Assembly: GCA_000708835.1 (NCBI GenBank)
Contig: DF237056.1
Location: 124,001 to 188,000, forward strand
DNA: 64,000 nucleotides
Source of the DNA: Klebsormidium nitens
Lineage: Eukaryota; Plantae; Klebsormidiophyceae
Direction of reading: 5' to 3'
In this document: positions 22,024 to 44,354 of the stretch, one piece after another
Layout: each line of letters opens with the position of its first letter
How positions within the stretch are numbered: the first letter of the stretch is position 1
The notes under the pieces: model-generated
The model's input: the letters and a program-made list of their open reading frames with translations, nothing else
Database searches by the model: none
Told to the model about the DNA's origin: nothing
Position numbers and translations under genes: made by a program

Positions 22024-27970
<5,947 letters not shown>

Positions 27971-28754
27971 CTTCGAAAGACGGCCTTGCAAACAGCGGGC
28001 TTTCAACCAAAAAACGGGCCCCTAAAAAGACAACCGGCCACGACAACGGACTCCCTACTTCAAAGACACTAAGATAGTTACACGAAAACTTGCTGGGGCA
28101 GGCTGGCAGTTGAGGAAAAGAGCTAGCACCACAAAATGCGCCCTGGTGACGTCGCCCCTCCTCCGTCTGCCAAACACGTTTCCGTCAGGAAGGGCCGGTA
28201 CGTAACTTTGCAGTCAGCCATGGACGATGACGTTCCGTTCCGTCCCCGACCAAGCAGTTCCTGAGTGATACCGGAGTCCGGCTGTCTTCTTTGGATCAGA
28301 AAGAGCCCGTTTCTTTTGAGACATGCAGCGCTAAGCACATGAATTTGAAAATCATGAATGAGTACGGCCTACTGGGAGCGCAACGGAACGGAACGGCGGA
28401 CTTATGGGTGCACTTGCGGGGTGGCATCTGGCAGCTCAGCCGATTGACAAGTGTACGCCTGCCAGCTTTCACGAGCTTCCAGCTCAGGAAGGCGAAAAGT
28501 GCATGCAATGGTGACTGTGGAAGGGAAGCGCGCGACCTTTCCATGGAAGGCAATTGCAGGGGCAGTTCCATCTGCTGGGTGCAAAAGCTTCCTGTTTGCT
28601 TTGCAGAAAGGCGATTGTTAAATTGGACAGGAAGCTAGACGTGCAATTGGTTGTCAGCTTGTTGAAGGAAAGTGTCTCTTGCAAGCAACTTGTAGAAGGG
28701 ATTAAGTGCTACATCTGGTTAATGAGCAACACGCAAACTTGAAAAGCAGAAACA

Positions 28755-31700
28755 ATGGCTACATCCCAAGTGCCAAAAGACCCCAAGCTCTATGAGCTGC
28801 TAGGAGTTGACCGGTCCGCTTCTGAAGAGGAGATCAAGCTTGCATATGGCGAGAAGGCCATTCAGGTGGGAATTTGTTCCTGAAAGCTTTGTGATTTTGT
28901 GTTTGGTAGCTCTCTTTGATTTAATGGATGGTAGACCTTTTCTTCCCTTTCTGCAGGTCACAATGTAAGAGCTGGCCTTCATTGACTGACAATAAGCCAT
29001 CACTATTGGACTGCATCAGTGCCAAAAAGCTGTTCTGCATGCACAAGCTGTGCTGACGGGTTGTGATACGCATTTGAGATTTCATTTTCCAATTCCAAGC
29101 CTGCTGTACGTTGAGTTTTCCTCAAATGCCAACATTTTTCCATTGGCAGACAACTTCATACCACCACCTGTGTAACTTGATAACCAAACTCATGAAAGAA
29201 ACGAAGCTTGGAAGTTTTGGTGCCTTTTTATTACGAGGTTTTGACCTCCTCAATTGACTTTCTCCCTTGTCCTATGCAACTTCATTTGCAGATGAAGTGT
29301 CAGTGGCTCCACGAGTGGTTCATATGCATGCACCCTTCCAATTCCCTCTGAGTTGTGTCCTGTATTACATTGAACTTTCAACCAACCAAGCTCAGAAATC
29401 AAATTTTTTTGTTGTCAAAGGTGAAAGTCACGCGAATGCAACTTGATGCTTTTCCTCTGCTTCATTAGGACCTTAGCAAATATCTAATGAGTGCCGTACA
29501 CACGGTGACCTGTGCTGTCGTGTCATTCCTAAACAACAGAAGGTCAAACCCAGAGCGCCTATTTTGAGAGCAAGAGCTTATTCCACACAATTCATTGATG
29601 ACGTAGTTGCCCAGTATTATGAAGGTGGTGACATCTCTGGTGACATCTGTGACATCGTTTCCCTGCAGCTGCAAGAAAGGATGGCCAACGTCTTTGGTCC
29701 CCGCACCGCCGACCCTGCCGCTCTCGAGTTTGAGCGCCTCCAGTTGCAACAATTGAGCGCAGCCCTCGAGGTGCTGACTGACCCCCAGCAGCGCTTGGCA
29801 TACGACGTCACCTTTCCCCCTAGTTACGGAAAGGAAGCAGAGGAGAAGACGGTTCAAATCCCAGAGGGGCCTCCCAAGGCACAGAATGAGCAAGCGCAGG
29901 CTCTGGCATCTGCAGCCATTGCGTTTGCTAAGCTGCTGGGCAAAGGCAAGCTGTGAGTTTGCCATGACACATCCAGCCCTGACTTATATTTGAGAGTGTT
30001 TGGTTTTACTTTACGTAGTCTTCAGATCTGTCTATAGTCATTCCTGTCACATCATAAGTTGCTGGCTATGCTTTCGCAGGCCGGATTAAGGGGTTCATGA
30101 ACCAACTGGTGAGGACACGAGAGTTTGACAATGAAAGACGTACTTCGGCAAAACATTTTGGCCACTTGTTGTGTTGAGTTCAAGGCTGCTGATCATCTGT
30201 AGGCCTGATGTGGTTAGCCAAGGAGCTACTGTTGACTGTTGTCAATACTTGTGAGGAGGAAAGAACTCCTTTTTGCGCCTGGTTACAATCCGGATGGCAA
30301 CAAGTTCTCAGAGGAAAGCGAAGAAAATTGCTTGTAGCAATCTCGATGACGACAAGCTCCGATGCTTATCAAGGAAGAGTTTTAGCGAGCCTGTCACTTC
30401 TGCTTGACAGCTTTGAGGACTATGTTGGACAATTGGCGACGTTGGCCGCTATCATCTTCGAAACAGGGGGTGACATTGGAGGCGACGCGAAGCCTGTCAT
30501 TAAGGAGCTGAATCAGGTCGGCTATCTGCCTGAGCCCTTCCTGCCTTGTGTTTCACCATGTTTCCTCAGTTTATTGTGTATATGACAGAAGAGTTGCCCT
30601 AGTGCTGTGTTTGCATTGTTGAAAGGTTCCTCAAACAATGAAAGAGTTCGGAGGGAAGCAGGTGCGGTGAAGACATGAATCGTACTCTATCGATGTTTCG
30701 CAAGCAATCCGATACTTTTTCTAGAGACAGGTCGTCCAGCTATGCAGATTCCATGAGTAGTTCACAAAGCTTTCCCTTGACCAACCAAAGGACTGCAACT
30801 GAAGAGGCTTCTCTCATTAAGCCCTGGCCTCTTTCTTCAGGAACGTATCGAGACTCTGGCCGAAATCCTCAAGCTCAAGATTCAGCCGTACGTGACTGGA
30901 GACAAAGAGGGATTCCGCCAAGCCGTTCGAGAAGAGGCAGAGGTTCTTCAACAAACGCCATTTGGAGTGCCGATGATGCACCTGATCGGGTGAGCAATCT
31001 ATTTATTGGCAAAAGCAGTCTCTCTTTCGCTAAAGACGTGTTGCTCTTGCCGCTGTTTTGGTCATTCGGCTTTGTCCTACAACTTTTGTCCTAATGTCTT
31101 TTTTTCGGATACAGGAGGTGCAAACAGGGTCCTCAATTGCGAGTGGGCACGAGCTTAAGCATTTGTGGACAACACCGTTTCCTGGTCTTTCAATTCTCCA
31201 GAGGTTTGTCATGTGCTGTGTTTGTGCGAGCTTCATCCACTGCGAAGTATACAGATCTGGGCCCAGATTTAGAACGGCTACTCTAAGGGCTGTCGATGCT
31301 CCGTTTCCAGGTACGCATACGAGCGGGCCGCCAATCCGTATTTGGGCCATGTCGTCAGCGAGTGGTTCACGAGGATGGGGCACAAGCTGTCGGTCTTGGT
31401 GAGTCTTCGACAAGTGTTCTCGCATACCTCGGCAAATGATAAGGTAGATTGCTGTGCAAACTCTTCTGAAATGGGTTCTGCTTTAAAGGTACTGCTAGAT
31501 GGCTGCCAGATTTTAGACGGCCTCGTCCAATCGTTGGAATTCGAAGCGATCCGGCTTTGATTGCCTTTGCGAGGCTCTCGAATTTAGACCTGCGAAGTTT
31601 CTGGTGCTGCGTCCGATTGGGTTTTGCTACTTGACGTTTTCTGGTCGTCTGGTTGCCCTTCGTCACGTGGCAAGCTTTCACCCCAGTGTCGTTAAACCTG

Positions 31701-34700
31701 GTAGTGGCAGAACAACTGCTCACTAGTACTAAGGTACATGTGACGGAAAAGCAAGCGTCTCATTATTGTGAAGGCAATGCAATGCAGGAAATACGCTATT
31801 TCCAACATTCCGTGGTGAACAAGTAGCTCTGTGCCCACTCTGCAGGCCAACGCCGCGCACGGCTACGCGAGCGTGAATGTGATGAAGTACGACGTATTCC
31901 ACCGGCAGAGCTACTTCGTGAAGGACGTCATGCCCGCCAAGGAAATGGCCGAGTACTTTGAGGACCGCCTGGGTTGGCTCATCACCTCGCTCTGGGAGCT
32001 CAACTGCAAGGACGCGGACGACACGTTGGCGGCTGTGACGTCACGTGTGTTGACGCAGGGTGACGTCAGCAAGGAAGAGATCCGACTGCGCGCAGAGGCC
32101 ATCAAGGAGATTGCGACGGTGTTCCAGGTGGGGGGTCGTACTAGCACGTCCGGACGTGAAGCTTCTGGCGAATTTTTGTTCGAAGTCTGGGTTTGAAAGC
32201 TTGGACGTGATAGCTTGGTGTGTAAACTTCCATCGTTTTGCACAGAAATCGAATCTAAGTCGGACTTGAAGTCGGTTGTAGGGGGACAAAGATTTGTTCT
32301 AAGAGCGGGTTCCGTTGAATGGTGCGAGACATTGAACTCGATCCTCACTTGGCTTGCAAACCGTGTATTCACGTCCTCACTTAGGGTCTTTGCTTTTGTT
32401 CCAGGACGCCAAGTTCGTGCCCCCACCTGCTCCCCCTGCCAAGCTGCAAGAAGCAGCCCCCGGAAGCCACCGCACCTGGGACGACGCTCTTGAACAAGGA
32501 ACGGATTCCGCCAAGTCGGGAGCGGATCAAGCCAGCGGAGCTGCGAAGTCAGGGGTAGACCAAGCTAGAGGCTCGGCAAAGGAGGGCACGGAGCAGGCAC
32601 GGGATGCAGCAAAGTCCGGCGTCGAACAGGGCCGGGGTGCGGTCAAGTCTGGCGCGGAGTCGGCGAGAGATGCCGTTCATTCCACGACGGATCAGGCGCA
32701 CGACGCGGCGCTGTCAGGAATTGACCAGGTAAGCGGGCTTTTCCCTTTGAAGGAATTGGAGGTCACTACTCGATTGCAGAAGCTAGTGGAAGGGCCACGC
32801 TTAACCTTTCAGTGGCTAGAGCGGCGCAGTCTTCGAGCACCTCAAGACATGGCAACTTCTAAGCTCGATGGACCAGAGAAAGGGAGAACCACTTATGTCT
32901 GCGTCGATTGACGATCTAATGCTTGCAAGATGTCAACTGAAGTTGGACAAGAGGGACTACGAGGCGTCACTCAACAAGCAGCTCGTGCTTTTCGCAAAAC
33001 CCGCGAATTTCATGTCAAGCCTGTGTGGTGGCACAGAATAGATTGTACACTTTTGCATCCATTCACCCGTCTCATGCAATCAAGATTGTGGTGTTGGATT
33101 GCGCTGAGAAAGAAGCAATCTGTTGCCAGGAGGTTATTGTTGAAGCGTTGTCGACCAGACAAATTCAAGCCCGAACATCAAACACAAGCATCAAACTTTC
33201 AGGCACGTGACGCAACCCACGACGGAGTGGAACAGGCCCGTGGCGTTGCCAAGGACGTTGCTGCCAAGGCTGGCCCTACTGCCGAGAAGATCAACAAGGA
33301 GCACATCCAGCCCCTGGGCGAGGAGGCCGCGGCGCAAGTCGTCAGCAAGACCGGGATGCTGACGTCTGATTACATCAGGCCGGCAGCGGACGACCTCGCA
33401 GAGAACGCGGAGCCCAAGACCAAGGAGTTTACAGAGGTGGGTAATTAGTTGTGAACGGTACCTTCGAAACAAGTTGAAGTTGGTGCCTGGGTTCAGCATC
33501 ATGTTACGGCTCTGCTTCGACTTCTTTTACAAAGGCAGCTTATGAAGTAAGAGTTTCTTGTTTGCTTGGGAGCTAGAGGGCAAAAGCACATTTCAGGCGG
33601 TCTGGAGAGGCTTTCGAAAGCTGGGTAAGAGGGGGCGACTCATTCAGACACTGCTATCCGCAGATATGGATATTGAGATTGGCGCAGCTTTTATCACGCA
33701 GACGTCGTTCCGAGAGTCGCCTGAGTCCTTGGAGTTCCTGTTGCTTCTTGATTTTGATAGTGAGGAGTTACTTGCCCTCGCAAACGGGTCAAAGATGAAC
33801 CCCTTTCTGCTTCTTGCAGGAAACTCTGAAGCCCACAGTGGCTGACGCCGCGGACAAGGGTGTGGCGGCAGTCTCCGACTTCACCGAGGGCACGCTCAAG
33901 CCTGCTGCCAAGGAGGTGGCCGAGAAAGCAGAGCCCAAGACGAAAGAGTTTACGGAGCAGACGCTCAAGCCGGCTGCGAAGCAGGTAATTAACACGCTGT
34001 GATATGAATGACACCTGCTTGATTTGCAAGGTCTTGGTTTTCGCAAATAGGGTTTCGTGCAGCTTTGCTGGTGCTGCTGCTAGAGTCCAACACTCCTCGC
34101 CTTGACTACCCTCCAAGAAAGTATGGACCAAACGCTTGTGGAAGCCCTTCTTGTGTGCAGCACAACGAAAGGGAGTCCCTAAAGGCAGAACACCTCGAAG
34201 TGATAATTTTGCCTACAAACGCATTTACCCGCCACATCTTATATCACCATAAGATGACCGCAATAACACGTGCAACTCCGCAGGTGGCTGACGACACCAA
34301 TGCTGCCGCTGAAGAGCTTGCCGAGGGTGCGATCAAGCCTGCCGCCCACAGGGTTGCCGAGGACGCACAGGCGGTCGCTGACAACAGCAGGTACGATTCC
34401 TTTCATGTATGGAATTTGTTTTACTTATCTGGACAAATTTAAACGGAAAATACGCTCTTTACATCTGTCTTGGCGGGACAAATCAACCACTCGAACGCGC
34501 TTGCTTGATAGCTTGTTCTCTGGCTGGAACACACGAGGAAAGTCGATTTTCGGGGCCTTGTGTGCAGGCTGCGGCCCGACCTACAGTCTTGAAGATTGCT
34601 TATAATTGGGCTACAAGTCCCGTCGTTCGAGTGGTATTACAAGTGCCTTTCGTGATGAGGCCAACATCCTGCTATCACTCTTCCGTTTCACCAACTCAGA

Positions 34701-37700
34701 ACTTCGCTGTTTGGTAACGTCCCCACCTGCCTCTTGTCCACAAACTTGCTGACGTTGTCCTAAACCCTCTTTGCAGAGACGTCATCGTGGGGTCCGCCGA
34801 AGAAGTGGCGTCGCGCCTCCAGCCGACCGCCGACGAGTTCAACTCCAAGACGCTGAAGCCCCTTGCCAAGGAGGTCGCCGAAAACATTGAGCCCGACACT
34901 AAACGCTTCACTCAGGAGCAGCTGCAACCTGCGGCGGCCCAGCTGGCGGAAACGATCCCCGAGGCCATGGACCGGTTTGTGGAAGAAGGGCTCAAGCCAG
35001 CAGCGGACTATATTGCGGACAACGCCGAGGTGGGTGGTCAAAGAGAATAAGTCTGGCCGGTTCTGCTTTAGCTCTGCGCTAACAACGCTGCTCGTCGGTC
35101 GGAGCAGTGCCTTCCCCAGGAGTCTGCTTATTCACGCCTTTATCTGTTGGCGTTGACAGTATGCGAAGTGCTGGGGTCGCGATTGAATGTGTCATTTGGC
35201 CTGAAGGGAAACATGCGTCCTTCGCGTTGGTGTTTTCGGGGTTTTGAGCGTGGTTTCAACGAGGTGTCATATGCTGGTTCATATGAAAACGGCAGGTCTG
35301 GACGACTTTGTTAGCTTCGTATCTCTAGCAGCTAAGCACGTGCCCCTTTCTTTGCAGCCCCTCGCCGACAAGATTGCCAAGGAAGACCTGCGACCTCTCA
35401 CCGAGGCAGTCGTAGGGTTAGCCCAACAAGCGCAGAAGTCGGCAAAGGAAGCCAAGCCCCGAATCCGTGAGGGTGCCGAGGCGCTTAAGCAAGCTACCGA
35501 CGAGTCAAAGCAAGGGCTTAAGGAAGGGCTTAGCAAGGCGCAGGGGACCGCACAGAAGACGGCGGACCAGGTCAAGGATCGGGTTAGCGAGGGGCAGAAG
35601 GGCGCTGAGAAGGCAGCGGGGCAGGTTAAGGAGGGGGTCAACGAGACAGCGGACCGGGTGAAGGGAGGGGTGGAGCAAGGGAAGAAGGCGACCGAGGATG
35701 CCACGGACAAGGTTAGCGACAAGGTTAAGCAGGGTGGCGAGAAGGGCAAGCAAGCAGCCGGGCAGGTTAAGGAGGGAGTTAGCGGGAGGGGTTCCGAGGA
35801 CGTGAGTTTGGGGGAAGCTGGGCGGAAGAGAGCGACGGAGGAAGGGGCTGGGAAGAGGAACGAAAAGGAGGCGAAGGTGACCGGGGAGAAGGACAACCAG
35901 AGAGGGGCTCACTCTACCGGGGACAAGAGAGACGAGACGGAGGCGAAGTCGGGTGGAGACAAGAAGGATGTGAAGAACATTGCGGAGGACACCGTGGCAG
36001 CTGTGGAGCAGTCCTTGGTCGACAGGTACGTACACGCAACCGATAAAATTCTCAATGCGACTCTATAAAAGGCTGCTCATACGTTCCCATTTCGTTGATC
36101 AGCTTATCTTGACGATGAGGTTGTTTCGGTGACAAAACTTGGGTTTCGTGCTTCAAGTCTTGTTCTAAAGCTGTGTACCTGTTTCGCCCAGAAACCAGCT
36201 TTTCGTTCGCACAGTCTTACATCACTTCTGCGAAACCGTCTCTTGAACGTTCTACGTTCGTATGAACGCCGTCGCTTATACGTGAAACTCGTCTTCTTCA
36301 GTCTCCGCACCCAAGCGCTGGACCCCTTGGCCAAGGAGGTGGAGTCTCAAGCCGTCCCCCTGGCGCGCCACCTCAACCGCGGCATGCTCCAGCCCGCGGC
36401 CGCCGAGTACGCCGACCAGTTCGAGGCGGCGGCCAAGGACTTGTGCGACACTGTTGGGCCGGTCGCCGAAAGACTGCCCAACTCGCTCAAAAACGCCATC
36501 CACAGGCGGCGCGTGCCAGAAGAGCTGGCGGTGAGTTGACGTCATCAGTTCCCTTAGCATGGTCTAAAGATCCTGTCGTCAGAAGGGATCGTCTCCAAAC
36601 CCCCTCTCTGTTTCCTAAGCTATTACCTTGTAGCCAAGTCGGACGACGATTTGATGCCGTGAGCATGATGTTGCAGGGTGTTGTTGGATCACACTTAGAT
36701 TTCAAGGATGGGGAGCACGCATCTTGATGTCTTCAAGAACTGAAGTCGTAACCTCCTCGAAGAAACTGAAGGCTTCGCTTTTCAGATCCCACCTCCTCCT
36801 CGGAGTGCGTTTTTTGAGTGCATGCTTCCCAGTTCATCACATTGTTAACGTAGTCGCAATCAAAAACTTGAAGTTTGACAAGTCTCGTCTTTCTCTCCGC
36901 GTCCGCAGCCGGACCTCTCAGTGATCGCTGTGCGCATGGAGCCCCTCATCGACCGCATTGTGGACATCGCCATCGAGGTGCGCAAGCAGGCGCCGGCGGT
37001 CGCGCAGAAGATCCCCGAGACCGCAGAGAAGCTGGGACAGGTTATTGAGGAGGGCGCCCAGAAGGTAAGCCGCGCAGTGTCCCCCATCCTAGTTGGCAGA
37101 TAGAAGGTGCTTGCTGAGCTAAGAACCGCTTGATTAAGTTACAGGGGCTTCGAACTTGGCCCTGCACTTCCTGTTTTGTCTATGTGTTCATGTTCTCAGG
37201 GCTTTCTGCTGTGATGATGTTACGATGACGTTCAATTTATGACATTACAAAGCGGGGTCACTGGCTCGCTGTGTGACGGCTGACCTAATCTTCATCACCT
37301 TTGAGTTCCTGACCCTCAATTATCTGAAAGCATGTCGATTTTGACTCTACGATAACAAAGATCATCGACATTGGAAAGCTTCCTGCTTGTTCTCTTCGTA
37401 AGCAAACGCCGATTCCGTCTTCAAGCCTGGTGACGAGAGAACTACACCATGTTGCTACACTCCTCTGAATGTGATTCTGTACTCTGTTGAACAGCGTCTT
37501 TTCCTATCAGGTCAAAATAATTCAAGTTGCACAAATGATTCTCTCTTAACGCAGGTGGCGGATCAGGCCCAGCCCGCAGCGGACAAGGTTGGCGACATCG
37601 TCGAGGCGAACGTGCACGTGGCAGCAGAAAAGACGACTGACCTGGCAAAGATCGCCGTGGAGAAGCTGCCAGATGACATCACTCTCAAAATCGAGGAAGT

Positions 37701-40687
37701 CGTCAACGAGCCAGCAGACACGTCAGCGGGTGCTAAGGCAGAAGAGACCGGAGACAAGGTCAAATCAACTGCTGAGAGCGCCAAGGGCAAGGCAGGCGAG
37801 GTGGCAGACGAAGAGAAGGTGAAGCAGGCCGGCGAGAAGGCGCGCTCGGCCGTCGATGACGCGACATCGACGGCGCAGGACGCGTCTGAGAAGGCCAAGG
37901 CGAAAGCGGACGAGACGGCGGAGAGCGCGAAGGATGTCGTGGACCGGGCCGGGAAGAGCGCGGAATCGGCGGCGGGTGACGCGGCTGACGTGGCGAAATC
38001 GGCGGCACAAATCGCGCAGGAGCGCGGCGACCAAGCGGAAAAGATCTTGAAGAGCGCGGCCAAGGACATTGCGGAGAACGTGCGGCCCGCCGCGGACGAA
38101 CTGGGGGAGCAAATGAAGGTATGCGCGTCTGTTTCGAGAGCGTCTTGGCCCGTGCGTAGATATTTCCATGATCCGCAGTCACTTTCATCGGCCTGCTATC
38201 GTGGATGTGCTACGTTGTTTAGTTGGTGGCAAATCGTTTTGAGAAGTATTGTGTGCGAGGTAGCTTAGGGGGAGGACTGTGGCGGGTTCTAAGGAGGTTA
38301 GTCATGTTTTAGGGCTGCGAAGGTTGCGAGTGGGAGCTGAATACTAACAATGGCTCCCTTGTGTCTTGAAAGGGCTCAAGAAAATTGTTGCTAATTTTCA
38401 GGGTCCTGTACCAAAATATAATTTTTGCACAAACAACGCTTCCGTTGCAGGGTTTGGTCGTTGGGCTCGGACTATTTTTATTGACGCCTGAAAGGTTTTT
38501 ATCCATCTTTGGACCGCAAGTTGACAAAGGTGTTTTAGGTCTCATGTTTTTCCGCTTGCCCGCAGCACAGAAATCTGTGGCCGCTAATCAGGCTGTTAAA
38601 CAGTCTTTAATTTCAGGTTATCAGTTGAATAGCCGGTGTTCGACGTTGCTCCAAGGCTGGTTGTCGCCCAAGCTGGTTGTTATGGACATTTAACCACTTC
38701 CTGACCAGCCCATTAGCACCTATGGTTAACGGCAAAGATGACTGTGCAGGACTTCGCCAAGGAGGCCGCGGACGACATCGAGCCGGCCGCGGCGCGCGTC
38801 TCGGAGCAGCTCGAGAGCGCGGCCCACGACGTCGCCGTCAACGCGGAGCCGACGGCCGACCGCGTTGCGGCCGCGATCTCAGACACCGCCCAACAAGCAT
38901 CCGCAGACTTGCCGAAGGCGGCGGAGCGCGTCTCTGCTGACGTGGAGAAGGCGGCGCGGACTGTGGCGGAAAATGCGGAGCCGGCGGCTAATGACATGGC
39001 AAAGCAAATCAAAGGGAGTGCCGCGGCGGTCGGGGATAGCGTGGTGACGTATGCGGACAGCGCGGCCGTGGGGCTGGAGACGGCGGCTCACGACGTGACG
39101 GAGAGTGCGGAGCCCGCGGCAGAGCAGGTGAGGGTCGAAGGAAACTGCTTCAAAACTTTTCGATTAGAAAAAGATTATCCGTGAATCGTTACAAACCCTT
39201 GGAAACCTTTGAAGCTTACCAGTGTGTACTTGGTACTACTCGTTGCCAGATTCCGTTGTCCCAGGCCATCGTGCACACTTTGTTGATCTGTCTTGAAATA
39301 CGGTTGCTCCCGCTGCTTTTGAAACCTTTCACCTAGCAAAGCAGGGGAAACCTCGCTGGCTGCGACTTGGCTTTCTCCAGATCTGAATTTCTTATAGAAA
39401 AGCTGAGTGCTGGCCGTCTTACATCTCGGATCTCAGCTCTGAACAATTGTTCACTTGACAGGTGTCCAAGGATCTGAAGGCCGGCGCTGAGGCCGTCGCT
39501 TCGGACAGCAAGGCGGCCGCGGACAAGACTGCGGACAATCTGAACGCGTCCGCAGCCCAGGTGGCGAAGGATGCGCGCCCGACGGCCGACAAGTTGTCCA
39601 AGAACCTGGAAGAAACGGCTGAAGTCGCGGCAGGTGAGCGGCATTTGCCGGAATGCACTCTGCTGGGCTTGAGGCGTTAGATGATCCCTGTATTTCCTGC
39701 TCCGCCACTTGTGTAGGGTCTGCTTTAAGGTTCATGACAAGAAAGCGTTCTGCGTTTGTGCATTTCACCTTTGGTTTGTCTCCAGGCATTCCCGTGCAAC
39801 ACTATCTTCCCCTAAACATCTAATCAGTAGAGAAAGAGGGAAGCGAGCTCTCCTTTGAGCCGCGCTTGTTGATCTCAATGCCATTTTGTATGTCTTAAAG
39901 GATGACGGTCCAATTTGCCAAATGAGGAGGTAAAACGAGGGTTGTCGAAAAGGGGTATTGACTTCATAGTCAGACTGCTTAAAAGACAAAAAGCCTGGCG
40001 GCCCTTGCACCGGTAGACCTCTTCATTGTTGGACGAAAGCGTTTCTTTGGGAATTATTGCCCCCTTCCAAAGTTACCGAATCCTCTTTCTTCCAATAACA
40101 CCTTCCATCTACGTAGCGGCATAAGTCGCTACTCGAATGGAGCCGCATCTGATCTTTGATCTTTCGTAATTGCAGAGAAAGCCATCAAGCCGGCTGCCAA
40201 GTCCGCGGGCGACACCCTGGAGAGCACGGCCAAAACCGCCGGCAAGAACCTGGACGAGGGCGCGGATTCCGCTGCGGACAAGGTGAAGGAGAAGACGGAC
40301 TCCGTTGCGGAGGAGGCGAAGCGGAAGACCGGATCTGCGGCGGAGACGGTGAAGAGCACAACGGATGACGTCGCGAAGAAGGCAAAGGAGACGGCCGACA
40401 AAGGGGCGGAGAAAGCAAAGGAGACGACGGACAGTGCGGCGGATAAGGCCAAGGAAACTGCGGACAGTGCGGCGGATAAGACCAAAGAGACGACGGACAG
40501 CGCAGCTGAGAGTGCCAAGAAGGGGGCTGATAAGGGCGCGGAGAAGGCGAAGGAGGGAACGGAGAATCTGAAGGAAGGTGCCGAGAATTACAAGGAAAAG
40601 CTGAAGCAGGGGGCGGAGTCGGCTGGGGAGAAGATGCAACAGAAGACGAAGGAGGCTGAAAAAAACGCGCGTCAACTCGGGGCGTAG
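28755..40687 (+). CDS. J-like domain (no HPD) + DnaJ-X domain fused to ~1,250 aa of LEA/perilipin/apolipoprotein-like repeats (18 exons, ~1,593 aa)
   Basis: Exons 28755-28865, 29669-29952 (alternative acceptor 29540), 30411-30516, 30841-30989, 31311-31398, 31846-32127, 32405-32728, 33203-33436, 33820-33984, 34284-34390, 34777-35029, 35358-36025, 36302-36530, 36909-37064, 37555-38118, 38750-39127, 39462-39633, 40176-40687. All junctions are GT-AG and phase-compatible, with a single stop at 40685-40687. The N-terminal part resembles the ATJ10/Djp1 family (LYELLGV...EVLTDPQQRLAYD; LFEDYVGQLA; LWELN). Confidence 0.82.
40382..40546 (+). repeat. 33-bp coding tandem repeat (five LEA group-3-type 11-mers)
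   Basis: AKETADKGAEK / AKETTDSAADK / AKETADSAADK / TKETTDSAAES / AKKGADKGAEK; the 33-nt period is visible in the DNA. Confidence 0.85.
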
Positions 40688-42314
40688 CGGGATTGAGGAG
40701 TTTGTTGGTGCTTTACGGTTAATTTGCGTATGGCGGTGGTTGTGAGTAGGGATGGAATACTGTTAACGGTGGTGGTGAGAGGGATGGTTATTGCCTAAGT
40801 GGTAAGGTAGATATTGAGCCAAACATTTTGCAAGTTGCGGGCGCCTACCTAGTTCTTGCACGCACAGATAGCGAAACTCTAGATTGCGGCCTGTATATAA
40901 ATCTTTGATGGAAGATATGCTGAGCTGGTTTTAGGTTTTCAATCCTGTCAATTCTACTTAGTATGTGAGTGTCTGTTCTTGAACGAGTCCTTTGAGTGGA
41001 TCTAACAATCTTAATCTATGCCGCCCTGAATTTCACTGGCGCGAAGAAATCTCAATCGCCTATACCATATACCCTCCGACCGATCATTGTACGTACATGT
41101 CGAATTATTTGTTTCTCACAAGCTGGCAACTACCTCGATATACTGGTGTCGTCTCTTTAAAACCTCAATTCTTACCAACACGAACACCGACAGGCGCTAA
41201 CACTCGTTCGAACACGGTCCTATGCGAATTGCATGAACGAATTGTGCCAGTGCCGTCATGACACCGGTTGATGTTGATATTCGGCTGCAATATGGACAGC
41301 TAGTGCCAGGTTGGCTGCTTCCTGCCATATATAGAGCTAGTGCTAGGTTACCGGTATATAACGACATGCCGACCATGCACGCTACTAACCATGAGAAGCT
41401 TCACATCCATGTCATACTTTTCTGCGTTTATGCCCAATTTTAAATGGCATGCATGATAACTTGCATCCGTGCATCAAGTTCGGGCCTTAGTTGAATAATT
41501 GCCCAGTGCGCAGCTTCTATAGTGACTGTCCAAGATGAATTGCTTATCAATCAGCTTGGCAGAATTAACCAGATGCATACGCTTTGCTAACATGTGTCAG
41601 GAGCTTCTTTAGGCTAGCTTCTGAAGTCATTCCAACCTTCCAAGTGAGCATTGTTTCCGTCCCGATCCTGTCATGAATCTGCCACATTTGACTACGCTTC
41701 AAGGATAAGTTATCCTTGTCGCCCACACGATGTCCAGATATGTCAGAGCAACTCCAAAATCTGCGGAAGAAAAGGAACGAAAATTCAGATGAGCATGCTG
41801 TTTCCTGACGTAAAGACAGAAGAAAGGTCCTCGCTAAAAGGACTCCGGACGATGTAGGAAAGGCCCGAAAACATCCGCAATCCCAGTCACAAAGCGTTAG
41901 CTTTTCACGATTGGGTGGCCGACAAACTTCGTTAGGTTCGCTCGCAAGAATCCATGCTATCCTTCTATCTTCGTTAATGAAATCGTATGATAAGCTCTGA
42001 GGCCTCAGGCCGAAGCTGTTCCCACCGACATCAAGGACGCTTCCGAGCTTCCTGCCCGAGACTCTCATGGTCTGCGCACTTTTGCCAAAACTCAGAAAGC
42101 ACAATTGGACGAAGGCGGAGATATGAGACCCGACGGGACTATGCAAGGAGCAACCATGGGCGTATCTTTCAAGGATACTTGCACTGGATAAAAGCTAGCG
42201 GGGACGTCACCTGCTTCACTTTTTTCACCAAATTTGGGAGCCCTTCAAACGCCGACTGACACCAGCGGCAAAGTTTGAGCACGGGCGTTGAGCTCTTGAA
42301 CTTTTGAGCTTTCT

Positions 42315-44354
42315 TCAAATACATGGGAGGACCAATTCTTGTACAAAGAAGAGCATCTTAGTGACGAGCACTCGAAAGAGCGAGTGTGTCTGGCCGCTCA
42401 CGTTGATGGGCATCTCTTCAATGATGAAGCCCAGAGACTCTTCCAAGGACCGCAGCATGCCAACTTCCGCCGCAGCTACGAAGCTTAGTACGATGCCGCC
42501 TGCAGCAAAGGCATGGCAGGTGCGGTACTGATGAGGGCGACCACGTACGTGTTGGTCCCGGTCAACATGACGCCCTGCCTGGAATGCGTCCGACTGATCA
42601 ACTCAAGAGGTGAGACCGCCAATTTTTTTCAACCCAGGCAAAACAGGGCGTAACAGCTCGTGGTGCTCAGAGATCCTCAGCAATGAGAACAGACAGCTGT
42701 CCAACTTCGTCTCACTCACTTGAAGAGTGTGGCGCTCCCGACAGGAAGGACCGCGGTGGGGAGGATCCGGAGGGGGTGATCTTGGGCAGAGCGCTCGCTG
42801 CAGTTGGGCCGAGCACCGCAGCCACTCGGCGCGCGTACTGCTCCTGCACGGGAGACCAGGCGATGATTCCATTAGAGAGCCAATAAGATCGTGCTTTTAA
42901 CAGCTTCGTTCAAAATCACATCACAAGGTACCTGGGTGGAAGGTGTATTGGTGCGGTACTATCACTGACCCGCAGATCAATCTGCTTTGATCATTCGACA
43001 TTATGGTTTAACAACAAATTGCAACACCCAGTTCCCTAACCTCTATTCCGACGAACGTTTTGAGAGCTGAGGCACAGACGAATGAACGCCAGGTGACGCC
43101 TGCAACAATTGCAAAGCAATCATGCAGATTCGCGGAGCTTGTTGAGATGAGATTGAACACCGGCTGACACAAGCTGGTACGAGCTGCTGTCAATAAGAAT
43201 GGCGCCTGAATATTCTACGATGCTAAACAGCTGTGTCTATTACATTTGCACGTTCCACGGAGGCCTCACCTTCTTCAGCGGCAGCTCATAGTTGATCATC
43301 AGCTTTGCCAGCAGCGGGCTCTCGCCAAGAGCAGCCATTGGAAGGCACGCATCCGTCATCGCCAGAATGTTTAGTGCAGCCCTCGACAGCTTAGCTTGCT
43401 TTCCTTCCTCCTGATCTTCTACAGATTCTGCGCCCTTTTCCTCTTCTCCGGCAGGACTGCTTTCAGAGGGGGTGGGCTTGGCAGGAGGGCTTTCGGAAGG
43501 ATTTAGGGAGTGCTGTCGTCTGGCATGAAAGGCTGATAAGATTTTTGCGCGATCGCTTTCCACCATGTCGCTGTGCTGCAGATGGCATAGCAAAGCAGGT
43601 TTACTCCTTTGCTTTGGTAACAAAGAATCAAGAAGAAGTTGGTCTCCACGATCACCGAGAAAGTATATCCTGTACTTTAGCATCAACAGGCTGGCTATCG
43701 CTGCTGCTAATCAATATGCAGTCTGCACATGACTCCATTAACTGGACTGTTTAGATGGATGCAAGTACCGTTCTTGATTACATAAGTGGACGTGACAAAA
43801 GCTGGCCCAAGTTTGCAAGTACTCAACATCACTCAAGGACCCAAATGAATGCGTAAGCAGGCCAGATTTAGAATGGACACAAGAAACGTGTCGAGTACCA
43901 GCGCAACCTTTTGACAAAGTACATTTGCCCGGCTTTGCCTCACCAGACACTGGACAGAGAAGCGAGTCTCATATGCGATGGCGCCAACCAAGGCATCGAG
44001 CACATCCCGCGTGCCGCAGCAGATGCCAACCGCCACCTCACCCCTCCGCGCCAACACCTCCAATAGATCCTTCAAAGTTCCCAGCTTGAATTGGGGCCGC
44101 TCCACCGCCACGTAAAACTGGGGCAGACTGCTGTGCCCTGTCACTGGAGAGATGTATCGGCCGGCTGGGGGCTCTGATGAGCGGAGATCTAGAGTGGGGG
44201 GAGTTTCAGGGATGGTGTTTCGCAGGCCAGAAAGTGAGGGTGAGCTTGATGGGGAGTGGTGGCCCCGCCCGCTCGTGGTGGCAGCATTTTCATGGGGTTT
44301 CAGAGGGTGGCTGTAGGCAGGCCGCGGTTCGTCGTTTCCTGGACCGCTTGACAT
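42315..44354 (-). CDS. eIF4A-like helicase C-terminal (RecA2)-domain-only protein
   Basis: Exons 44354-43944, 43575-43270, 42843-42720, 42499-42402 are in phase. Motifs: QFYVAVERPQFKLGTLKDLL, ICCGTRDVLDAL, TDACLP...GESPLLAKLMINYELPLKKEQYARR, GIVLSFV...LRSLEESLGFIIEEMPIN. This matches my recollection of a conserved plant family (Arabidopsis At4g37020-like). The last few codons are unresolved; the end given is the read-through stop. Confidence 0.8.

Follow-up and report, generated by a model that had tools for sequence, protein, structure and literature searches.

LEA-type proteins are usually seen as free, untargeted protectants, with the way they find their targets an open question. Among J-proteins of the DnaJ-X type, yeast Djp1 is linked to peroxisomal import and, by the title of a 2026 preprint, to mitochondrial phospholipid metabolism; Caj1, also of this type and from yeast, binds to membranes that contain phosphatidic acid (bioRxiv 10.1101/2021.06.18.448950), and J-proteins require their HPD motif for Hsp70 stimulation (PMC10410713). 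The two kinds of protein meet in grasses, where DnaJ-DnaJ-X-dehydrin genes (rice DHN1, Brachypodium Bdhn9, and Setaria) have been annotated as a DnaJ-X J-protein followed by a hydrophilin on the same strand (PMC5411031, PMC8709310), but this "fusion" is, by one assessment, probably the product of adjacent genes merged in annotation (PMC6364937). The first-pass annotation of the DNA studied here, in describing LEA proteins as typically stand-alone, overlooked these annotated, contested genes. We analysed a 64,000-nt stretch of the Klebsormidium nitens genome (contig DF237056.1; hereafter the window), and we think it likely that one 18-exon gene in it encodes a 1,593-aa protein, with a J-like/DnaJ-X head and a long repeat tail, that would act as a tethered hydrophilin.

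Gene structure and conservation among algae

The gene lies on the + strand at 28755-40687, where 18 GT-AG exons form one ORF of 1,593 aa, starting with the ATG at 28755 and having its sole stop at 40685-40687 (Table 1). Six exons (340 aa in total) make up the head; the tail is made of 12 exons (A to L; 3,762 nt including the stop, 1,253 aa), all of them GT-AG and phase-compatible, with three non-phase-0 junctions among them. The observation made in the first-pass annotation is confirmed as a whole: its coordinates (the ATG, the donor at 32127, the acceptor at 32405, and the stops) all hold, and so does its run of 12 phase-compatible repeat exons to a single stop at 40687.

Table 1. Features of the J-like/DnaJ-X repeat gene and their positions in the window.
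Feature	Positions	Strand	Description
Exon 1	28755-28865	+	Start codon, J-like helices I-II (MATSQVPKDPKLYELLGVDRSASEEEIKLAYGEKAIQ); Pfam DnaJ profile positions 2-26, E 1.5e-5
Exon 2	29669-29952	+	HPD-less loop (LQERMANVFGPRTADPAAL), J-like helices III-IV, linker; Pfam DnaJ positions 42-63
Exon 3	30411-30516	+	DnaJ-X region begins (FEDYVGQLATLAA...); conserved block 30397-30540; aligns to canonical DnaJ-X P0020 and P0012
Exon 4	30841-30989	+	DnaJ-X; PF14308 43.6 bits (cut-off 29.4); conserved
Exon 5	31311-31398	+	DnaJ-X; conserved block 31308-31404, 94% identity; aligns to P0020 and P0012
Exon 6	31846-32127	+	DnaJ-X C-terminal part, end ...IATVFQ, phase-0 donor; PF14308 38.5 bits; dN/dS 0.01
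Head/tail junction intron	32128-32404	+	277 nt; unalignable between species
Exon A	32405-32728	+	Pro-rich linker (DAKFVPPPAPPAK), then seven 11-mers (ARGAAKSGVDQ type); lag-11 identity 0.39; dN/dS 0.25, 0.12
Exon B	33203-33436	+	11-mers grading into Pro-punctuated 23-mers
Exon C	33820-33984	+	23-mers of TLKPAAKEVAEKAEPKTKEFTEQ type; same repeat type in L006, L008, L009, L010
Exon D	34284-34390	+	Ends in codon phase 2
Exon E	34777-35029	+	23-mers; first tail Met conserved in all three close species
Exon F	35358-36025	+	K/E/G-rich LEA-type 11-mers, 222 aa; whole-codon length variation among species
Exon G	36302-36530	+	Non-repeat conserved module, first half (GPVAERLPNSLKNAIHRRRVPEELA); 97% aa identity to L002
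Exon H	36909-37064	+	Non-repeat conserved module, second half (PDLSVIAVRMEPLIDRIV...)
Exon I	37555-38118	+	A/E/K/D-rich 11-mers, 188 aa
Exon J	38750-39127	+	AEP-punctuated 22-mers, apolipoprotein-like
Exon K	39462-39633	+	Ends in codon phase 1
Exon L	40176-40687	+	About 15 11-mers of KETADSAADKA type, then the stop codon at 40685-40687

In two other species (L002 and L003+L004) no exon or splice site is missing and the reading phases are unchanged, giving single ORFs of 1,604 and 1,582 aa that change in length by whole codons only; L002 and L003 share the end point of the protein to the residue. Exon nucleotide identity to L002 is 85-94%, and the introns are unalignable between the close species. 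The dS is 0.42 in the comparison with L002 and about 1.3 in that with L003, and dN/dS is 0.01-0.28 in each exon (0.03 and 0.07 for the head, and 0.13 and 0.17 for the tail, in the two close-species comparisons), which shows purifying selection on every exon; judged from these alignments, an intact 18-exon ORF in two further species together with such low ratios is far beyond chance.

The search for the same architecture in other algae, which the first-pass annotation had proposed, was successful in further algal genomes or metagenome contigs (L006, L007, L008, L009, and L010/L011): the domain order (HPD-less J-like, DnaJ-X, hydrophilic repeats) is unchanged in them, the J-like part being covered in L006, L008 and L011, where the 5' end is available, and neither order nor orientation changes between lineages that share as little as about 46% identity in the DnaJ-X exon. 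Exons homologous to exon A come after DnaJ-X in L003, L006 and L008; L006 and L008 have extra repeats between the J-like and DnaJ-X parts. The non-repeat module of exons G and H is conserved in L008, L009 and L010, and an intronless ORF of L009 aligns across the G/H splice of the window (E 7e-14). Junctions of L006 were used only where checked by eye, the automatic model of this locus being wrong at several. Exon 1 is conserved in L002 and L003 with its donor CAG/GT, and its intron is at the same position in the distant L006, L008 and L011.

Several alternative features were rejected. An exon 2 acceptor at 29540 was discarded, as L002 and L003 conserve only the one at 29669; phase and absent conservation spoke against a mini-exon at about 30081-30109 and against acceptors at 30203, 30338 and 30374; and an ORF at 32930-33448, with an ATG from which it runs on into exon B, has an unconserved upstream part. 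The conservation 68 nt past the exon A donor includes indels that are not multiples of three, so it is non-coding. A terminal mini-exon after the DnaJ-X exon of L001 (ttttgcag/TCAGAAGGGTGA) was also rejected, since an AG is missing at that place in L003, a close relative of L001. An Rfam search of 26000-43000 gave no match.

An HPD-less head and an amphipathic repeat tail

The Pfam DnaJ profile (PF00226) matches the head in two parts (25.4 and 16 bits), neither of which reaches the 27.8-bit cut-off, since each exon was scored on its own. In the window, helices II and III are connected by the loop ...AIQLQERMANVFGPRTADPAAL..., which has no HPD, and the loops of L002 and L003 are equally HPD-less; among the distant loci whose 5′ end is available, HPD is replaced by VGS (L006), ISS (L008) and VDV (L011). 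HPD is therefore lost in every lineage examined, and the head cannot be assumed to drive Hsp70. Downstream of the J-type domain, exons 4 and 6 each exceed the PF14308 cut-off (Table 1), and the head shares 35% identity over 188 aa with the canonical DnaJ-X protein P0020. The head is a J-like domain with a replaced HPD loop plus a DnaJ-X region of the Caj1/Djp1/ATJ10 type; it offers a clean case of a J-like domain that has lost HPD and yet has remained under strong purifying selection (dN/dS 0.03-0.07). No N-terminal targeting signal was recognised by eye in the 1,593-aa protein.

The tail is strongly periodic: identity autocorrelation peaks at lags 11, 22 and 33 (z 14.7, 12.7 and 9.1), and the hydrophobic period is 3.67 residues (z about 40), with a GRAVY of -0.75 and 6.4% Gly. 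It is a mosaic of amphipathic-helix repeat families with an 11-residue period, in which LEA-type 11-mers, Pro-punctuated 22/23-mers and one conserved non-repeat module can be distinguished as its three families. Tandem, hydrophilic, amphipathic 11-residue repeats, a trait of group 3 LEA (LEA_4) proteins, are thus present, and the only named sequence relative, a match of exon L, is a LEA76-like protein (E 2.4e-4); the best LEA_4 score, with exons scored separately, is 33.6 bits against a gathering score of 51.1, and comes from exon L only. No tail exon matched the Pfam Dehydrin profile at E up to 0.1-1. AlphaFold2 predicts exon J as one continuous helix (pLDDT 79). Judged by the Pfam cut-offs, the tail is LEA_4-like or apolipoprotein-like only and a member of neither family, all LEA_4 and Apolipoprotein scores being below threshold; of the first-pass description, the about 1,250 aa of amphipathic repeats stand.

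We propose that the protein would work as a tethered hydrophilin: its tail may be largely unfolded in dilute cytosol and may form long amphipathic helices on membranes or lipid surfaces, or upon water loss, and its head would give place or partner specificity, not Hsp70 ATPase stimulation. A shield for membranes or lipid surfaces is the function that we infer. It is also conceivable that the gene is as modelled and that the tail is mainly a lipid-surface scaffold, like exchangeable apolipoproteins or perilipin (on lipid droplets, or in membrane repair), instead of a desiccation protectant of the LEA kind. The Pro-punctuated 22/23-mers fit such a role; PF01442 (Apolipoprotein) is the commonest weak Pfam match in the tail (best 39.7 bits against a gathering score of 90, E 5.5e-10, in exon J), ApoA-IV is the best match of exon J among PDB sequences (E 1e-5), and ApoLp-III, phasin and perilipin give further weak matches. 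But all of these scores are far under the family cut-offs, low-complexity amphipathic repeats readily converge, and exons A, F, I and L are nearer to LEA_4 11-mers; we consider this reading unlikely, and the lipid-surface and protectant roles are in any case not mutually exclusive.

The junction between head and tail

The DnaJ-X exon ends ...ATVFQ with the donor CAG/GTGGGG, and exon A opens at the acceptor ttttgttccag/GAC, in phase 0 on both sides. Six lineages share this donor, the polypyrimidine-CAG acceptor and phase 0, and their junction introns measure 277, 311, 872, 321, 136 (L008) and 326 nt. Conservation against L002 ends at 32129, at the donor, and restarts at 32387, the intron sequence between being unconserved. 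Reading through the donor would add 22 residues up to a stop at 32194-32196, and the read-through tails of the three close species (22, 62 and 92 aa) are unrelated to each other. The first-pass annotation had seen no stop after the DnaJ-X exon within the model, and this holds; read-through to the stop at 32194-32196, which it had named as evidence that would speak for separate genes, is disfavoured by the unconserved tails, an outcome drawn from species comparison.

Its second point, that the repeat part has no convincing ATG of its own, was likewise borne out. Exon A and the 23 open codons upstream of it contain no ATG, and the intron has a single ATG, in another frame; L002, L008 and L007 likewise have no ATG in exon A or in the open frame before it, and an in-frame ATG is found upstream of the acceptor in L003 (2 codons) and L006 (6 codons). 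No initiator is conserved in exons A-D (about 340 aa, dN/dS 0.04-0.25), and the first Met common to the three close species is about 341 aa into the tail. Exon A is best read as an internal exon, because coding conservation begins exactly at the conserved acceptor. Canonical DnaJ-X proteins also run on past ...FQ into a Pro-rich tail.

Searches of protein collections gave no spliced ORF with any of exons 6, A and I in it: a representative protein search with exon 6 returned genomic ORFs only, and P0037, P0038 and one LEA76-like protein were the only matches of exons A, I and L in word-index searches. A scan of JGI contigs for the spliced junction of exons 6 and A gave no match, and the control junction of exons H and I was equally unmatched, so that the scan carries no weight either way.

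Could the locus yield two products, the full fusion and a short J-like/DnaJ-X form that arises when the 277-nt intron is retained or when polyadenylation takes place within it? An in-frame stop follows soon after the donor in every species, so intron retention would yield a head-only protein, and the intron of the window has a TGTAA motif at position 94; but this motif is missing from the L002 intron and lies far downstream in that of L003, and the intron is without any conserved sequence, which makes a second product improbable in our view. That two adjacent genes were wrongly merged, a J-like/DnaJ-X gene ending by read-through at 32194-32196 and a LEA-like gene starting near 32405, has a precedent in the grass DnaJ/dehydrin pairs (PMC6364937) and could draw on the ATGs shortly upstream of the acceptor in L003 and L006, but is very improbable given the ATG-less frames of the window, L002, L008 and L007, the lack of a conserved initiator in exons A-D, the onset of coding conservation at a conserved acceptor, the unrelated read-through tails, the gap of just 136 nt in L008, and the order and orientation kept at such low DnaJ-X identity.

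The giant fusion of a J-like/DnaJ-X head with a repeat tail is thus probably real, because several related algae keep the same join. The earlier interpretation can be retained for the single fused gene, as splice sites and phase are kept in six lineages and exons A-D are under purifying selection; the membrane or lipid-droplet coat that it suggested, with a chaperone or targeting module for desiccation tolerance, is a candidate role. It needs revision in its view of LEA proteins as stand-alone and in its choice of best parallel.

Comparison with known systems

The domain order of the head, an N-terminal J-type domain and then PF14308, is that of the DnaJ-X J-proteins (yeast Caj1/Djp1, the Arabidopsis ATJ10 type, and the rice Os01g50700 group), and canonical members likewise have a phase-0 intron after ...FQ and then a Pro-rich C-terminal extension. 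In contrast to them, the algal family is without HPD in all lineages examined, and the part that follows DnaJ-X, about 100 aa long in canonical members, has grown to 1,253 aa of repeats; the canonical members in our search results are up to about 490 aa long. If the gene is as we read it, a conserved natural protein ties 1,250 repeat residues to a folded module of a membrane-associated co-chaperone family, and would offer a direct test of whether hydrophilin shields are delivered by tethering.

Group 3 LEA (LEA_4) proteins share with the tail the 11-residue amphipathic repeats and a hydrophilic composition rich in A/K/E/D, but the tail exceeds typical LEA_4 proteins about five- to tenfold in length, is joined to a folded head, and includes a non-repeat module as well as the 22/23-mer families. 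Exchangeable apolipoproteins (ApoA-I/A-IV/E, PF01442) and apolipophorin-III share with it the proline-punctuated 22-mer amphipathic helices and a weak, repeated similarity; the exchangeable apolipoproteins are, however, an animal family, and no tail score exceeds the 39.7 bits of exon J. Convergence in periodicity and composition is the most likely source of the resemblance. Plasmodium RESA, suggested as a loose parallel in the first-pass annotation, has a comparable layout, in which a J-type domain lacking a functional HPD is combined with a DnaJ-X-like region and with long acidic repeats; but it is an exported parasite protein whose N-terminal domains and repeat chemistry differ, and no search of this analysis found a sequence relation to it.

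We regard the grass DnaJ-DnaJ-X-dehydrin annotation as the closest published parallel, closer than RESA. In grasses the tail consists of a few hundred residues of dehydrin (group 2 LEA, with K-segments), and the algal repeats are of a different type. A broader view, which we put forward tentatively, is that of an old, conserved algal family of tethered hydrophilins, in which the HPD-less J-like/DnaJ-X part was repurposed, free of Hsp70 ATPase control, as the anchor or partner-binding end of a giant shield of amphipathic repeats; LEA-type repeats would then be a modular appendage on several unrelated proteins of this alga, and the pairing of DnaJ-X with a hydrophilin, grasses included, would reflect a real functional link. 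The algal gene bears in this way on the disputed cereal annotations: the join is contested as an annotation merge in grasses, whereas here it is conserved across several algal lineages.

Gene model in the window

From reading of the sequence and its stop-free stretches we derived an 18-exon gene on the forward strand, that is, intron-containing eukaryotic coding DNA in which every intron is GT-AG with good consensus; after splicing, an ORF of 4,782 nt encodes 1,593 aa and has a single stop, at 40685-40687. The first-pass annotation had placed an ATG at 28755, a donor after ...ATVFQ at 32127, a 277-nt intron with its acceptor at 32405, twelve repeat exons running to one stop, and a read-through stop at 32194-32196, all of which were borne out.

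Exons of the fusion gene (positions in the window)
Exon	Position	Strand	Part and content
1	28755-28865	+	head; DnaJ profile positions 2-26; ATG at 28755
2	29669-29952	+	head; DnaJ profile positions 42-63
3	30411-30516	+	head
4	30841-30989	+	head; DnaJ-X (PF14308), 43.6 bits
5	31311-31398	+	head
6	31846-32127	+	head; DnaJ-X (PF14308), 38.5 bits; ends ...ATVFQ
A	32405-32728	+	tail; ARGAAKSGVDQ-type 11-mers
B	33203-33436	+	tail; TLKPAAKEVAEKAEPKTKEFTEQ-type 23-mers
C	33820-33984	+	tail; TLKPAAKEVAEKAEPKTKEFTEQ-type 23-mers
D	34284-34390	+	tail; TLKPAAKEVAEKAEPKTKEFTEQ-type 23-mers
E	34777-35029	+	tail; TLKPAAKEVAEKAEPKTKEFTEQ-type 23-mers
F	35358-36025	+	tail; K/E-rich LEA-type 11-mers
G	36302-36530	+	tail; non-repeat module with H
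H	36909-37064	+	tail; non-repeat module with G
I	37555-38118	+	tail; K/E-rich LEA-type 11-mers
J	38750-39127	+	tail; AEP-punctuated 22-mers
K	39462-39633	+	tail; AEP-punctuated 22-mers
L	40176-40687	+	tail; K/E-rich LEA-type 11-mers; includes stop

An alanine-aminotransferase-like gene (Aminotran_1_2; 27707-28006, reverse strand, and upstream) lies head-to-head with the fusion gene, ~750 nt upstream, and is also kept in the close relatives L002 and L003. The first ~190 nt of intron 1 (28866-29054) align to L002 (~75% identity) and not to L003; this stretch, which has no ORF and no Rfam match, may be a regulatory element or merely slow-evolving sequence.

Conservation of the gene and its head-tail junction

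A representative search with exon 6 returned two near-identical genomic ORFs, P0001 (99%) and P0002 (93%), whose sequences diverge completely directly after ...VFQ-V and whose contigs are L002 (18.5 kb) and L001; a search with exon A returned P0037, on a 99-kb JGI contig (L003, extended by L004). In blastn of the window against L002 the predicted exons alone align (85-94% identity), with conservation ending at 32129 and restarting at 32387. When the model is projected onto the relatives, each yields one intact ORF, of 1,604 aa in L002 and 1,582 aa in L003 with L004, with every splice site kept and all length differences in whole codons. The exon C donor is GC in L002 (L002:11524-11526, CAG/gcgagg) vs GT in the window and L003; exon J, undivided in the window and L002, has in L003 (18492-19407) an additional 538-nt phase-0 intron after ...VEKAAK, either gained or lost in the course of the family's evolution. 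Against L002 and L003 (dS of 0.42 and ~1.3), dN/dS is 0.01-0.28 across all exons, and the head (0.03 and 0.07, vs 0.13 and 0.17 in the tail) is the most constrained portion of the protein despite its HPD loss.

At the junction between exons 6 and A, the window, L002 and L003 share the donor (TTCCAG/GT), the polypyrimidine-CAG acceptor and phase 0; the intron itself is unconserved (277, 311 and 872 nt), and read-through past the donor would append 22, 62 or 92 unrelated residues, respectively. The earlier remark that the repeats have no convincing independent ATG holds: exon A and its upstream open frame contain no ATG in the window and L002, the sole ATG in the window's junction intron is out of frame and hits a stop, and the earliest Met common to all three tails is in exon E, ~341 residues from the start of the tail. 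Purifying selection acts on exons A-D, which are translatable solely from an upstream start. Matches to the fusion gene in protein collections are genomic ORFs only; the spliced junction of exons 6 and A is absent from the JGI contigs, which carries no information because a control junction (H to I) is equally absent.

Contigs of weaker DnaJ-X matches (~46% identity in exon 6) carry the same design: three species of a second clade (L006, L008, L009; exons 65-88% identical, introns unalignable), a third lineage (L010/L011) and a short fragment (L007). Wherever the 5' end is available, the J-like domain lacks HPD (VGS, ISS and VDV in L006, L008 and L011) and has an intron at the position of the window's exon 1-exon 2 junction. 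In these contigs ...IFQ/GT is followed by a canonical phase-0 acceptor opening a hydrophilic exon (SAKRRG...ADQAKQTGQQGADTAKQAGKEG...), then by FTEETLKPAA-type 23-mers and a GP.AE.LP..LK.A....VP module; the junction intron of L008 is just 136 nt, and an in-frame ATG before the junction acceptor is absent in four of six lineages. Further A/K/Q-rich amphipathic repeats, ~300-350 aa in all, apparently separate J-like and DnaJ-X in L006 (6713-8415) and L008 (6938-8713); the linker at this place is ~55 aa in the window. The observation first made on the window is confirmed; intact single ORFs in the close relatives and the same design in distant contigs indicate that the fusion is very probably real and conserved well past this species, and we hold the single-gene architecture with high confidence.

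Head and tail modules

DnaJ-X exceeds the Pfam cut-off (29.4 bits) on exons 4 and 6, and matches to the Pfam DnaJ model are restricted to the two stretches in exons 1 and 2. The representative search also yielded canonical DnaJ-X proteins, and alignment of the head to two of them, P0012 and P0020 (490 aa, carrying HPD), shows ...AIQLQERMANVFGPRTADPAAL... in place of the HPD loop. Since HPD is needed to stimulate Hsp70 (PMC10410713), the head is probably a J-like (type D) module rather than a working co-chaperone. An intron after ...FQ followed by a Pro-rich tail is found in other DnaJ-X genes too: P0020 reads ...VFQGKK...FLPPPPASS, and the window gene ...VFQDAKFVPPPAPPAK.

The tail (A 21%, E 11%, K 11%, D 8.5%; GRAVY -0.75; net charge -62) is a mosaic of 11-, 23- and 22-mers and one non-repeat module. 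Autocorrelation of residue identity along it has maxima at lags 11, 22, 33 and 44 (z 14.7, 12.7, 9.1 and 9.5), and hydrophobicity recurs every 3.67 residues (z ~40 vs shuffles), the periodicity of LEA_4 proteins and exchangeable apolipoproteins. All its Pfam matches are sub-threshold (Apolipoprotein at most 39.7 bits vs 90; LEA_4 33.6 vs 51.1; also YtxH and ApoLp-III), and its top PDB sequence match is apolipoprotein A-IV (E 1e-5). Among database sequences, exon L has just one named relative, a plant LEA76-like protein (E 2.4e-4). In the AlphaFold2 model, exon J forms a single continuous helix (pLDDT 79).

At L009:4897-5217, aligned to window 36302-37064, there is no intron between G and H, and one ORF spans both halves of the module, with the motif GP.AE.LP..LK.A....VP..L..D....A.R.EP. 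This uninterrupted ORF aligns over the window's G-H splice junction (E 7e-14) and thus independently confirms it. Within the tail, this module may be the one element for specific binding.

Proposed function and known systems

Roles tied to organelles or membranes are known for the DnaJ-X proteins that have been studied in yeast. Djp1 is required for peroxisomal protein import and, going by the title of a 2026 preprint, is reportedly tied to mitochondrial phospholipid metabolism. Caj1 binds phosphatidic-acid bilayers via C-terminal basic patches (bioRxiv 10.1101/2021.06.18.448950). The whole protein might be a tethered amphipathic shield, whose tail would fold, at lipid surfaces or upon water loss, into long amphipathic helices and whose head would position the shield or connect it to partners, a plausible reading that we put forward tentatively rather than favour.

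The known kinds underlying the fusion gene are DnaJ-X J-proteins and LEA-type hydrophilins; our literature search found no published description of the fusion gene itself. Closest among published cases are the grass genes annotated as DnaJ-DnaJ-X-dehydrin, in rice (DHN1, ~600 aa), Brachypodium (Bdhn9, 508 aa) and Setaria (PMC5411031, PMC8709310); this architecture has been viewed elsewhere as an annotation merge of neighbouring genes (PMC6364937). Unlike these grass genes, the window gene has another repeat type with no Pfam Dehydrin match, differs in size (1,593 aa) and has lost HPD, and its join is backed by comparative evidence in several lineages.
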